Positions 5,830 through 47,358 are shown, numbered from the stretch's first letter. The stretch: 64,000 nt of DNA from Obrimoposthia wandeli (GCA_977020255.1 CDROCS010000666.1:248001-312000); one strand, 5' to 3'. Notes: generated from the letters alone by a model not told the origin. Made by a program: numbers and translations.

Positions 5830-5904
5830 GCGTGCATCGTATAATGGCTATTACCTCAGCCTTCCAAGCTGATGATGCGGGTTCGATTCCCGCTGCACGC
5901 TCCA
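5830..5904 (+). tRNA. tRNA-Gly(TCC); left attachment site of the island
   Basis: GCGTGCA...TGCACGC acceptor, TCAGC-CTTCCAA-GCTGA anticodon arm, GGTTCGATTCC T loop, CCA end. Confidence 0.97.
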
Positions 5905-5914
5905 AACAACAACG

Positions 5915-5939
5915 AAGCCGCTCATTGAGCGGCTTTTTT
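5915..5939 (+). terminator. Rho-independent terminator of the tRNA operon
   Basis: AAGCCGCTC-ATT-GAGCGGCTT followed by a T run. Confidence 0.85.
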
Positions 5940-6083
5940 GTATCTGGCGTTTTAAATTTTAACCTTTCAGTACGGTAAATTTCAAATTGAGACCACTTAA
6001 AAATCGACGTATTTTCAATAATGATACAAAGTGACCTCACTTGTAAAAAACTTTATCTTCTTAATCTATTTATCAAATGTAGA

Positions 6084-6659
6084 TCAGAGTGGCCAGTGAT
6101 CAAAATAGATATGGTTTGCTTGCCAATCGACTTTTTCTTGGTTATCAACAAGTAGATATTTTGCAACTGTAAAGGCAAATTCAAAACTGACACCTAACCC
6201 TTTACCGCTAATAAACTGACCATCGACCACCACTTTTTGATCGAGAAACTGACCGTCATCGAATTTCTTATCTAAACCTGCCCCTGTTGTATAATAGTGC
6301 CGCCCCAACAGTTGATGAGCGGCTAATACCTTGGCTCCGGATGAACACAAGGCACAGATATATTTATCTTCATTAATATGACGTTTGAGGAAATCAATCA
6401 CCACAGGATTGGCTGACAGATTATCAGTACCTTTCGGTCCCCCTGGCATCATGACAGCGTCATACATCGTGTCGTGACAGTTTTTAAGAATATCATCAGC
6501 TGTAATACGTGTTTCAAAATAGGTATTCAACGCTGTCGTTTCCATACATGACAACACCGTTACTTTAATATCTAATCGACGCATAATATCGATAAATACG
6601 ACAGCTTCACCTTCTTCGAATCCATCAGCTAACAAAACAGCAACATGCTTCTCTGTCAT
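6084..6659 (-). CDS. DJ-1/PfpI (ThiJ/YajL-like) family protein
   Basis: VAVLLADGFEEGE, YDAVMMPGG and ICALCSSG (nucleophile Cys) motifs; last gene of the kdgK-eda transcript. Confidence 0.9.
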   Translation of the reverse strand: MTEKHVAVLLADGFEEGEAVVFIDIMRRLDIKVTVLSCMETTALNTYFETRITADDILKNCHDTMYDAVMMPGGPKGTDNLSANPVVIDFLKRHINEDKYICALCSSGAKVLAAHQLLGRHYYTTGAGLDKKFDDGQFLDQKVVVDGQFISGKGLGVSFEFAFTVAKYLLVDNQEKVDWQANHIYFDHWPL

Positions 6660-6668
6660 ATTTAACTC

Positions 6669-7304
6669 CTATAAATTCAATAATTTACACGTTTCACGAA
6701 CATTATTCGCAATGGTTTCCCAATCGTTGTCACGAATAGCTGCCGTTGGTGCAATCCAAGTACCACCGCAGGCAATAACCTGAGGAATCGCAAGGTACTC
6801 CATCAAGTTTGCTGGCTTCACACCACCTGTAGGCATCAACTGAATATTGCCGTATGGACCTGTTAGTGACTTCAGCATATTGATCCCACCTGACGCTTCT
6901 GCAGGGAAAAACTTTAGTGCAGTAACTCCTAATTCCAACGCCTGCTCAACTTGGCTTGGGCTATTAACACCAGGAATAATTTTCACCCCCTGTTCAAGGC
7001 AATATTTAACTGTCGTTGGGTTAAACCCTGGGCTAACAATAAAATCCGCTCCAGCTTTAACCGCTAAATCGACCTGCGCAGGAGTCAGCACTGTACCTGC
7101 ACACAGGATAATATCAGGGAGTGCCGCGCGGATCAGGCAAATAGATTCGGCGGCCGCTGCACTGCGAAAGGTAATTTCTGCAGCTGGTAAGCCATTGTCA
7201 CTGAGTACCTGCGCCAGCTTTACTGCATCTTTGGCATCTTCAATCTGGATAACTGGCATCACTCGTAATGCTCTTAATGTTTCAATCCACTTCTCATTCA
7301 TCAT
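6669..7304 (-). CDS. eda: KDPG/KHG aldolase
   Basis: EITFR, GAGTV-like CAGTVL, KFFPA and MPTGGV motifs. Confidence 0.95.
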   Translation of the reverse strand: MMNEKWIETLRALRVMPVIQIEDAKDAVKLAQVLSDNGLPAAEITFRSAAAAESICLIRAALPDIILCAGTVLTPAQVDLAVKAGADFIVSPGFNPTTVKYCLEQGVKIIPGVNSPSQVEQALELGVTALKFFPAEASGGINMLKSLTGPYGNIQLMPTGGVKPANLMEYLAIPQVIACGGTWIAPTAAIRDNDWETIANNVRETCKLLNL

Positions 7305-45127: not shown

Positions 45128-45273
45128 TTAAGTGGTAATACTGCCCTTATTATATTTACAAACGAGTATATGTATTAAGGGCAGAAAGCATATACCCTCA
45201 CCTGTTTATTTAATCTGACCAGCTTTGCTGTCGGCCAGATAAAAATAGTATTTTTCAAACCAAGGACATAATA

Positions 45274-47124
45274 ATGAAAAAGAATTTTTTACTGTTTTCA
45301 GTGTTACTTGCTTCTCTTCCAGCGGTTGCTGATTGGGATCAAGCGTATTTTCGAGGAACACCGAATGACTGGCAAACCGAATCGATGCAAAAAATCAGCC
45401 CTAATCATTGGCAAATTACAAAAAAATTCGCCACTGGCAGCAATGGTATCGTACCAAGCTTTAAAGTAGATCGCTTCGGTGACTGGGCAGAGTATTACCC
45501 ACAAATAAACTATATTGTCGATCCAAATAAAACTTACGAGATCAACTTTTACGACGATACTAATAAAGTGGTTGTACATGAAAAACTCGCCTTTGATATG
45601 CGTGATGAAACCATGTATTTCGTTTTCCTTGATCGCTTTTCAGACGGCGACGCGAGCAATAATACTGGCAATAACCCGCAAACGTACTCTGCTGATAGAT
45701 CAGATTTTAAAAAGTATTTCGGTGGCGACATTAAAGGCCTTATCAATAAACTCGATTACTTGAAAGACATGGGGATTACCTCTATTTGGATCACCCCACC
45801 AGTAAACAACGTTGATCAATTAAATAAAGATGGTTCTGCAGCTTATCATGGGTATTGGGGGCGTGATTTCTTTCAATTAGACGAGCACCTTGGCACTCTG
45901 GAAGATTTTAAGTTATTGAGTCAGAAGATGGATGAATACGGTATGAAGCTGGTTCTAGACTATGCGCCAAACCATTCAAATCCCAATGATGAAAATGAAT
46001 ATGGAGCTCTATATAAAAATGGTGTATTTCAAACCGACTTCAACGGAGATAACCAAGACATCTACCACCACAATGGCGGCGTGAGCGATTGGGATGACTA
46101 CTATCAAGTTCGTAACCATAACCTCTTTAATCTTTCCGACTTCAATCAAAGCAACCCAAAAACGTATCAATACTTAGTGGATGGGGCAAAGTTTTGGATA
46201 GATCAAGGGGTTGATGCTATTCGTATAGATGCCATCAAACACATGGATAAGTCTTTTATTCAGCAATGGACTAACGAGCTGAATTCCTACGCAAAATCAC
46301 AAGGAAAACCTGACCTGTACTTCTTTGGGGAATGGATGGACGCCGGAGCGACGGCCACAGGAATTAATCAGTTATCGATAGATTTTGCCAACACTTCTGG
46401 TTCAGCTTTACTTGATTTTGGCCTTCGTAATACGATAGAAGATGCCTTATTACAAGCCAATGGAACCGGCATGTACGCAATCAATAACTACATGAAGATC
46501 CGTGATTCAAAATTCACATCAAGTGATTGGCAAGTCGTTTTCTTAGATAACCACGATGCTCCTCGTTTATCTACAGTACTTCGTTCAGATGCAACAAACT
46601 TTGGTCCTGGTAAAGATAAATGGGGTGGCCGTCAAAGCATTCCTTTTGCTCAAGATCGAGTGGAACTTGGCTTAGCGCTTATTATGACCTCTCGTGGTAT
46701 CCCATGTATTTATTATGGTACAGAAAATTATGCCGCTAACTTCACGACCAATGGTTTTGGCCAAGTAGGTAATGATCCGTATAACCGTGAAATGATGCCA
46801 AGCTTTGATAAAACAACCCCTGCTTATCAGCTTATAAAAGCATTAAGTAAGTTACGTAAAGACAGCTACGCCATTCAACAAGGGGCTTATATCGAGCGCT
46901 GGGTCAGCAATGATGTACTTGTTTATGAACGTAATGCTGGTGATGATGTGGTAATTGTAGCAATGAACATCGGTAATAAAACGTCGGTTAATGTGATAAA
47001 CCTTAATCTAGCAAACGGAACTTACGACAGTATTTTAGGCAGTGATCAAGTGAATGTGGCTAATGGCAGCGCAACATTTAACCTAGACCAAAATGAAGTT
47101 GTCGTACTTAGAACTAAAAAATAA
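45274..47124 (+). CDS. cgt: Secreted GH13_2 cyclomaltodextrin glucanotransferase, Klebsiella type
   Basis: YHGYW, DYAPNH, RIDAIKH, GEW and DNHD catalytic regions; HNLFNLSD and YAANFT.N.FGQVG.DPYNRE blocks I recall from K. oxytoca CGTase. Confidence 0.88.
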   Translation: MKKNFLLFSVLLASLPAVADWDQAYFRGTPNDWQTESMQKISPNHWQITKKFATGSNGIVPSFKVDRFGDWAEYYPQINYIVDPNKTYEINFYDDTNKVVVHEKLAFDMRDETMYFVFLDRFSDGDASNNTGNNPQTYSADRSDFKKYFGGDIKGLINKLDYLKDMGITSIWITPPVNNVDQLNKDGSAAYHGYWGRDFFQLDEHLGTLEDFKLLSQKMDEYGMKLVLDYAPNHSNPNDENEYGALYKNGVFQTDFNGDNQDIYHHNGGVSDWDDYYQVRNHNLFNLSDFNQSNPKTYQYLVDGAKFWIDQGVDAIRIDAIKHMDKSFIQQWTNELNSYAKSQGKPDLYFFGEWMDAGATATGINQLSIDFANTSGSALLDFGLRNTIEDALLQANGTGMYAINNYMKIRDSKFTSSDWQVVFLDNHDAPRLSTVLRSDATNFGPGKDKWGGRQSIPFAQDRVELGLALIMTSRGIPCIYYGTENYAANFTTNGFGQVGNDPYNREMMPSFDKTTPAYQLIKALSKLRKDSYAIQQGAYIERWVSNDVLVYERNAGDDVVIVAMNIGNKTSVNVINLNLANGTYDSILGSDQVNVANGSATFNLDQNEVVVLRTKK

Positions 47125-47144
47125 TTTCATTAAATCACCATAAT

Positions 47145-47182
47145 AATAAGCCCTATCTTCGCGATTGAAGATAGGGCTTATT
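47145..47182 (+). terminator. Terminator after cgt
   Basis: Perfect 16-bp stem AATAAGCCCTATCTTC / GAAGATAGGGCTTATT with a 6-nt loop. Confidence 0.85.
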
Positions 47183-47316
47183 TGATCTCAATGATGAAAT
47201 AACCTTCGAAATAATAAAGAACTTAAGATTAGCTGTTTGTTGTGGTCAAGTTTGGCTTTACAGTTGAAAACATTGTTGATACAGAACAAGAACTGATTTC
47301 TTTATGTAGATAAATA

Positions 47317-47358
47317 ATGCGGGTTCGATTCCCGCTACATGCTCCAGACAACAACGAA
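47317..47358 (+). repeat. Copy of the tRNA-Gly 3' end (right attachment site)
   Basis: ATGCGGGTTCGATTCCCGCT-ACAT-GCTCCA-G-ACAACAACGAA versus ATGCGGGTTCGATTCCCGCT-GCAC-GCTCCA-A-ACAACAACGAA at 5875-5916. Confidence 0.93.

Follow-up and report, generated by a model that had tools for sequence, protein, structure and literature searches.

The carbohydrate-catabolism islands of Vibrio parahaemolyticus have kept their integrase, carry the attachment (att) sites attL and attR at their ends and have a lower GC content (Regmi and Boyd 2019, PMC6537148). A survey of Klebsiella islands found that the block made of the T arm, the 3' acceptor strand and CCA is most often duplicated by tRNA-targeting integrases, and that the last gene of a tRNA operon is their preferred target (bioRxiv 10.1101/2020.11.02.365908). 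Here we analyze a locus of similar appearance, the interval between a tRNA-Gly gene and phoX in a 64,000-nucleotide (nt) stretch of DNA from the Obrimoposthia wandeli assembly (GCA_977020255.1, CDROCS010000666.1:248001-312000; contig C666), which is called the window below and from whose first letter positions are counted. The locus is an ordinary, decayed composite island at a tRNA-linked hotspot, of a well-known kind. The twist is that its larger module, for glycosaminoglycan (GAG) utilization, appears to be a resident locus of the host lineage that was relocated, while the smaller one, for cyclodextrin utilization, appears to be imported. A preceding interpretation from the DNA sequence (the sequence-only reading) had taken the interval for an old island without integrase, bounded by two copies of the tRNA 3' end, that grew by accretion of accessory DNA.

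Two other described systems are relevant to this locus. The cym/cgt system of Klebsiella oxytoca comprises the CymA porin, the CymE/F/G/D importer, a cyclodextrinase and a secreted cyclodextrin glucanotransferase (CGTase). Transducing or 'prime' elements of the lambda-gal/bio type form by aberrant excision.

The assembly comprises 1.35 Gb in 6912 contigs, of which many are bacterial and many are from Vibrionaceae. The phoX protein in the window is 95-96% identical to those of Photobacterium profundum ATCC BAA-1252, P. frigidiphilum and P. indicum, and the DNA flanking the variable interval is 92-98% identical to the same three genomes, so that the contig evidently comes from a profundum-clade Photobacterium. 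Gene content was assigned by Pfam, with additional comparison to NCBIfam and PDB, and tRNA genes by ARAGORN; the chance level of repeats was obtained from dinucleotide shuffles. The comparison sets included four sister genomes, 67 Photobacterium species, 401 Vibrionaceae, metagenome contigs and plasmids. The features of the locus are listed in Table 1.

Origin of the two modules

The GAG module is predicted to encode a complete chondroitin-sulfate catabolic pathway. Its degradation genes encode a PL8 lyase, two sulfatases, an anaerobic sulfatase-maturating enzyme (anSME), a DUF2264 protein, a GH88 enzyme, KduI, KduD, 2-keto-3-deoxygluconate (KDG) kinase and Eda. The N-acetylgalactosamine (GalNAc) side is covered by a GalNAc-type phosphotransferase system (PTS; IIA-D), AgaS, KbaZ/KbaY and NagA, and the other genes include a DeoR regulator, an SDF symporter and the KdgM porin. 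The genes span 6084-32245, and the module ends 27 bp past the DJ-1 stop codon on one side and at the kdgM terminator hairpin on the other.

Comparison with relatives points to a module that is native to the clade. In P. indicum a single colinear block with the same ends matches window positions 6057-32313 at 94.3-94.4% identity; the tRNA-Gly/phoX locus of this species is on another contig. With G039 (see below) included, the colinear matches are 94.3-94.6% identical. In P. frigidiphilum and in another genome of the clade (G039) the module is 92-95% identical, and its identity to relatives equals that of the flanking core DNA. The PL8 lyase is present in 19 of the 67 Photobacterium species, where its identity tracks kinship. 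In P. indicum and G039 the module occupies one shared site with both flanks in common, the left neighbor being atpC of a second ATP-synthase operon. Three more distant species (G067, G025 and G016), whose lyase has 64-65% identity, have its gene on one contig with that atpC, at a distance of 21-42 kb and with unchanged relative orientation, so the atp-adjacent position would be the older one. The corresponding flanks in this assembly are found 6.8 kb apart (C4085:269929-276696), with unrelated DNA between them in the parts that were read and no module, and the PL8 lyase is single-copy in the assembly. As atpC and phoX are 0.4 Mb apart on one contig in ATCC BAA-1252, the move would probably have taken place within one replicon.

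The GAG module is thus best described as a resident locus of the clade that was relocated, not imported. This contradicts the claim of the sequence-only reading that everything between the repeats is accessory. A shift of base composition across the modules, for which the same reading proposed to look, was not observed either: tetranucleotide profiles and profiles of GC content at third codon positions (GC3) reveal no anomaly for the GAG or the cym module.

Two side observations were made on the GAG module and its surroundings. The gene for the SDF-family symporter (17262-18937) is also found in P. indicum; G039 and P. frigidiphilum have ~125 bp in its place and an ~830-bp insertion at 19449/19459. 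An ~80-bp sequence from the P. indicum GAG flank (L107:9945-10024) has about 20 matches with ~550-bp spacing at the start of the window's contig, ~248 kb upstream of the window (C666:206-15735), and this arrangement resembles the cassette array of a chromosomal integron, with attC-like repeats.

The second module is a cym-type cassette of ten genes, encoding a TrmB regulator, a cyclomaltodextrinase-type GH13 protein, two permeases, a binding protein, the CymA porin, an LpxD-like hexapeptide protein, a 161-aa open reading frame (ORF), MalK and, as the last gene, a CGTase-like GH13 protein. The CymA assignment is full-length (PF16941, E 8.8e-164), and the importer is composed of an SBP_bac_1 protein, two BPD_transp_1 proteins and an ABC_tran protein with OB_MalK and TOBE_2. 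The activities of both GH13 proteins are predicted: the 592-aa protein, which has an N-terminal Ig-like domain, scores best as a cyclomaltodextrinase, below the cut-off, and the 616-aa protein has CGTases as its best PDB matches (6wni, E 9e-104) and reaches no NCBIfam cut-off. The LpxD-like protein (41964-42962; above the NCBIfam LpxD cut-off) and the 161-aa ORF (43397-43882), which belongs to no family, are present in every cym cassette examined.

The four sister genomes gave no CymA match, and the best matches to this porin are 64% identical among the 67 Photobacterium species, 70% among the 401 Vibrionaceae and 65% in metagenome contigs, so the cassette appears foreign to the host lineage and, of the two modules, would be the only imported one. 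No close relative of the cassette, with more than 70% CymA identity, was detected in the genus, the 401 Vibrionaceae or the metagenome contigs. The same ten-gene order does occur in metagenome contigs, with 50-95% amino acid identity per protein and 73-77% nucleotide identity in the closest case.

Hotspot, repeat and seam

The tRNA operon (5611-5904) and its synteny with recX are conserved in P. frigidiphilum and P. indicum. The gap between tRNA-Gly and phoX differs from species to species. In P. frigidiphilum recX, the three tRNA genes, the terminator and phoX are adjacent and represent the empty site that the sequence-only reading hoped to find among relatives: window positions 3189-5945 and 47373-49529 align to 7050-9846 and 9958-12120 of P. 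frigidiphilum contig L020, where tRNA-Gly (9731-9805) and the start of phoX (10001) are 195 bp apart. The P. indicum interval is 7.4 kb long and contains cydAB-ybgE, a metallo-beta-lactamase (MBL) hydrolase, an MbnB/DUF692-DUF2063 pair and DoxX; the interval of ATCC BAA-1252 is 15.7 kb long. The cargo of both has no similarity to the window, and no tRNA fragment was found at the right end of either interval. In the compared species variability ends at one common point on the right, ~55 bp upstream of phoX. As the sister species carry different cargo, the gap between tRNA-Gly and phoX appears to be a variable recombination hotspot. The gene at its border is itself variable, since phoX was not found at E 1e-50 in G039, a member of the same clade, and must have been gained or lost within the clade.

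The hotspot in P. indicum and ATCC BAA-1252 (L026:6344-9801 and L019:6357-9814) includes cydAB-ybgE and the MbnB/DUF692-DUF2063-DoxX set, and the latter suggests a module related to copper or to ribosomally synthesized and post-translationally modified peptides (RiPP-like).

The repeat noticed in the sequence-only reading is real. Its left copy consists of the last 2 nt of the variable loop, the T arm, the 3' acceptor strand, CCA and 12 nt of flank; it therefore begins 2 nt ahead of the T stem, extends beyond CCA and covers the same block as typical integrase targets. The 42-mer recurs once only, at the right copy, compared with 0.00 matches expected from the shuffles. Its 26-nt core occurs six times in the 1.35-Gb assembly, namely in the two window copies and in four complete tRNA-Gly genes on other contigs. 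This rules out a dispersed repeat, in agreement with the sequence-only reading. In the four sister genomes all core matches (up to 2 mismatches allowed) are exact and number 4-5 per genome, as expected for intact tRNA-Gly genes, the genes being judged by count and exactness and not one by one.

The right copy is joined directly to the upstream/promoter region of phoX. Just left of it, a stretch of ~50 bp (47250-47305) has counterparts of 77-89% identity, at one locus or several, in many Vibrionaceae genomes, and also in sister species without the cym cassette, away from their tRNA-Gly genes. A DNA search with the right arm (47150-47330) yielded only a short motif unrelated to tRNA-Gly, and an Rfam search of 46900-47600 gave no credible match.

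The two copies nevertheless do not seem to bound one att-to-att element, and on this point the island limits of the sequence-only reading have to be revised. The terminator downstream of tRNA-Gly (5917-5939) is common to P. frigidiphilum and P. indicum, and the whole 135-bp flank has an 89% identical counterpart behind a different tRNA-Gly gene of the same assembly, on contig C1688, downstream of which are ordinary genes and no integrase; no second tRNA-Gly fragment was found on that contig. The presence of the same flank on C1688 without an integrase indicates that it is native, and inserted DNA would thus begin near 6040-6056, not at 5917. An origin of the terminator in an old clade-wide island was also considered and is ruled out by the C1688 gene, which has the same terminator and flank and no integrase. 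Consequently, 123 bp of native flank (5917-6039) separate the left repeat from the inserted DNA, whereas the right repeat abuts the phoX promoter, and a simple att-by-att insertion would have placed the native flank after the right copy.

Between the two modules lies a seam made of a decayed second copy of phoX, foreign debris and a transposase remnant of the IS66 insertion sequence (IS) family. The two internal deletions of the phoX relic have their joints on 9- and 6-nt microhomologies. Over 545 aligned nt the relic has 93.8% identity with the resident phoX and 90-92% with those of sister species; it falls inside the profundum clade, closest by identity to the resident copy. It shares four of the nine states unique to the resident, and unique changes number 14 in the relic and 5 in the resident. 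The debris DNA has no match in the 67 Photobacterium species, and two debris ORFs gave no tblastn match to plasmids and no Pfam match; the only leads for the debris ORFs are weak methyltransferase-like ones, with protein atlas scores of 0.86-0.91. The IS66 remnant is 71-72% identical at the nucleotide level to IS66 copies elsewhere in the assembly.

The seam is also represented in other data. Of the words that make up 31500-35500, 98% are present in run X23, which may be the sample of origin. The contigs of this run cover both inner junctions at 100% identity with no mismatch, linking the GAG module to the phoX relic (31500-32387) and, across the debris, the relic to the cym regulator (32724-35500). 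The short-read graph of X23 breaks into bubbles over 32372-32734, the part in which the relic resembles the resident phoX. Pieces of the seam were further found at 95-100% identity in X1 (a food metagenome), X2 (an invertebrate-gut metagenome) and X24 ('organism D'). In X1 and X24 the pieces from the GAG module into the relic continue for only 30 nt beyond the join, and 31 letters were required for bridging; the debris/TrmB pieces of these two samples clearly bridge the join between debris and TrmB. X2 has debris pieces only. Several independent samples therefore contain the arrangement or at least a part of it. The read support is confined to the inner junctions (31500-35500), the outer joins being at ~6.05 and ~47.3 kb. 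Variants of the seam were observed: 32795-32899 (105 bp) is absent in X1 and X24, and 33697-33961 (265 bp) is absent in X2.

Table 1. Features of the tRNA-Gly to phoX interval and its borders (window positions)
Feature	Position	Strand	Remarks
tRNA-Ser(TGA)	5611-5701	+	ARAGORN
tRNA-Thr(TGT)	5746-5821	+	ARAGORN
tRNA-Gly(TCC)	5830-5904	+	ARAGORN; final gene of the tRNA operon
Left copy of 42-nt direct repeat	5875-5916	+	last 30 nt of tRNA-Gly and 12 flanking nt
Native 3' flank of tRNA operon	5905-6039	+	135 bp; intrinsic terminator hairpin 5917-5939
GAG/chondroitin utilization module	6057-32317		23 genes, 26.3 kb; Pfam
Chondroitin ABC-type PL8 lyase	14179-17280	+	1033 aa; Lyase_N, Lyase_catalyt, Lyase_8, Lyase_8_C
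Second phoX copy, decayed	32336-32880	+	~codons 245-655; two internal deletions
Foreign debris	32881-33888		~1 kb, short ORFs only
IS66-family transposase remnant	33889-34223	-	DDE_Tnp_IS66, E 4e-9, profile positions 2-52 of 284
cym-type cyclodextrin cassette	34354-47124		10 genes; two divergent operons; Pfam, NCBIfam
Right copy of 42-nt direct repeat	47317-47358	+	3 mismatches; non-functional tRNA-Gly 3' fragment
Resident phoX, intact	47416-49395	+	659 aa; PF05787, E 2e-182; right border of the interval

Proposed assembly of the island

We consider it somewhat probable that the 41.4-kb content accumulated at the hotspot in three or more steps and is now immobile. The native flank at the left copy, together with the phoX relic, suggests an original target duplication that extended from the T arm into phoX. 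In the first step, a mobile element with the ten-gene cym cassette would have entered at the 3' end of tRNA-Gly, leaving the tRNA fragment at 47317-47358 and duplicating ~2.2 kb of target that comprised the T arm, the terminator, the spacer and part of phoX. This could have been achieved by a circle that combined element DNA with neighboring host DNA and was integrated through one Campbell-type crossover, which would produce the observed order and would also explain the missing integrase; a candidate is an aberrantly excised, lambda-bio-like element already devoid of its integrase end. The second step has left visible relics, whose order we tentatively reconstruct as follows. The integrase would have been lost, an IS66 copy would have inserted and then been truncated, the left phoX copy would have been shortened by its 5' part and, at microhomologies, by two internal pieces, and the right copy would have lost the terminator and spacer, probably via deletion between two similar short A/C-rich stretches, of which one is located after the tRNA and the other upstream of phoX. 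In the third step, for which the comparison with relatives documents the derived position, the 26.3-kb GAG locus would have left its atp-adjacent site and landed with the native tRNA flank on one side and the broken phoX copy on the other, where the loss in the left phoX lies.

A more specific form of this scenario is a tentative possibility. In this 'prime'-type island, an element would have lost its integrase end in an aberrant excision, picked up host DNA from the tRNA 3' end to phoX and re-entered by a homologous Campbell crossover that created the 2.2-kb duplication, and the dead duplicate would later have captured the GAG locus. If true, the dead duplicate would have served as a safe landing pad, and islands would grow also by recruiting resident catabolic loci.

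Several observations weigh against the stepwise scenario. No integrase domain was detected among the ORFs of at least 100 aa between 5.9 and 47.4 kb or in the debris ORFs, although very short remnants could escape such a search. The absence of an integrase agrees with the sequence-only reading; here it means that neither the enzyme nor a recognisable remnant was found and that only the starting point of the repeat speaks for its involvement. The four sister genomes yielded no further island with this tRNA-Gly fragment at its border, and cym cassettes in other bacteria often have IS3- or Tn3-type transposase genes alongside and no tRNA genes, which favors IS-mediated movement. The right repeat copy lacks the terminator and spacer that tRNA-target or Campbell models would predict, so that an extra deletion has to be assumed. 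The maximum-likelihood tree of phoX does not resolve the sister of the relic within the clade, and the relic could equally derive from a related donor. For the GAG module, no repeats at its ends and no relocation mechanism were found, and either of the GAG and cym modules may have arrived first.

An unlikely alternative is the repair of phoX by import. The GAG locus would have landed in the native phoX and destroyed it, and a working phoX would have been regained from a related strain on a piece of DNA that also carried the cym island and the tRNA-Gly fragment as its attR. The right crossover would have been homologous, downstream of phoX, and the left join illegitimate or IS66-mediated, near the broken phoX end. 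The IS66 relic and the foreign debris indeed occupy this presumed left join; the 6.2% difference between relic and resident is about the interspecies level in the clade, within which the tree does not place the relic; and phoX, as its absence from G039 illustrates, comes and goes among these species. However, the resident phoX and the DNA downstream of it diverge from the sister species no further than these diverge among themselves, the relic has four of the nine states that are unique to the resident, and the missing terminator at the right copy would still lack an explanation. The same scars can be read as the work of no integrase at any time, which we regard as decidedly unlikely. The cym cassette would then have arrived by IS-mediated or illegitimate insertion, and the tRNA fragment and the phoX copy would be by-products of local duplication or template switching at a break, closed by microhomology joins. 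All readable scars are on microhomology, an IS66 relic lies beside the cassette here as IS3/Tn3 transposases do in other bacteria, no integrase was found among the ORFs of at least 100 aa, and no sister island with the same repeat was found; yet the repeat is the typical integrase identity block, an unlikely random breakpoint in a 2.2-kb interval.

The single foreign island of 41 kb between two att copies, which subsequently lost its integrase, is very improbable. It would account for the direct repeat of the tRNA 3' end, the empty site in a sister species and the absence of an integrase. It is in conflict with the 135 bp of native flank and terminator inside its supposed left end, with the phoX relic in its middle, with the lack of a foreign composition, and with the fact that 26 of the 41 kb are the clade's own locus, at core identity and at another site in relatives. 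That two loci or strains were wrongly joined during assembly at the repeated phoX/tRNA sequence is barely conceivable: the many Vibrionaceae contigs and the bubble in the X23 graph would be in line with a chimera, but the X23 contigs bridge both inner junctions without mismatch, three independent samples have the same seam pieces, and the relic, having deletions of its own, cannot be a collapsed copy. Under the stepwise scenario, as under the sequence-only reading, the island is old, without integrase and grown by accretion, and this part of the original interpretation held up, as did its gene content of a GAG locus, debris and a cyclodextrin locus, borne out by Pfam, NCBIfam and PDB.

Comparison with described systems

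About two thirds of the island DNA would be the lineage's own and one third imported, and a textbook-looking tRNA island with repeats can therefore mislead. For annotation this implies that a repeat-bounded interval at a tRNA gene is not necessarily one mobile unit, and that DNA which is accessory by its position is not necessarily foreign. The outcome brings predicted loci for animal-matrix chondroitin sulfate and for starch via cyclodextrin side by side, both apparently intact, with tRNA-Gly and phoX intact at the edges. Contigs from food, from invertebrate gut and from other sources also carry parts of the seam between them. No long-standing question is opened by this finding.

In its gene content the locus is close to described systems. 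The GAG module has the same lyase domains as the PL8 chondroitin ABC lyase loci of marine and gut bacteria, together with two sulfatases and anSME, GH88, KduI/KduD/KdgK/Eda, an Aga-type PTS with AgaS, KbaY/Z and NagA. This content is ordinary, and its unusual point is the genomic position. The cym cassette shares with cym/cgt of K. oxytoca the CymA porin, a binding protein with two permeases and a MalK-type ATPase, and GH13 proteins of the cyclomaltodextrinase type and CGTase-like, the activities of which are predicted here; it differs by the TrmB-type regulator, the LpxD-like protein and the 161-aa ORF.

With regard to its architecture, the proposed first step resembles the lambda-gal/bio-type elements in that loss of the integrase end, one-sided host DNA and a kilobase-scale target duplication on re-entry would be combined in one event, but the likeness is purely inferred here, as no phage or conjugation genes remain. 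The islands of V. parahaemolyticus (PMC6537148) offer the same picture of a variable site with catabolic gene clusters, a direct repeat at the border, an empty site and transposase remnants. In contrast to them, the island in the window has no integrase, a native-like composition and native flank inside its left repeat, and consists mostly of what appears to be relocated resident DNA.

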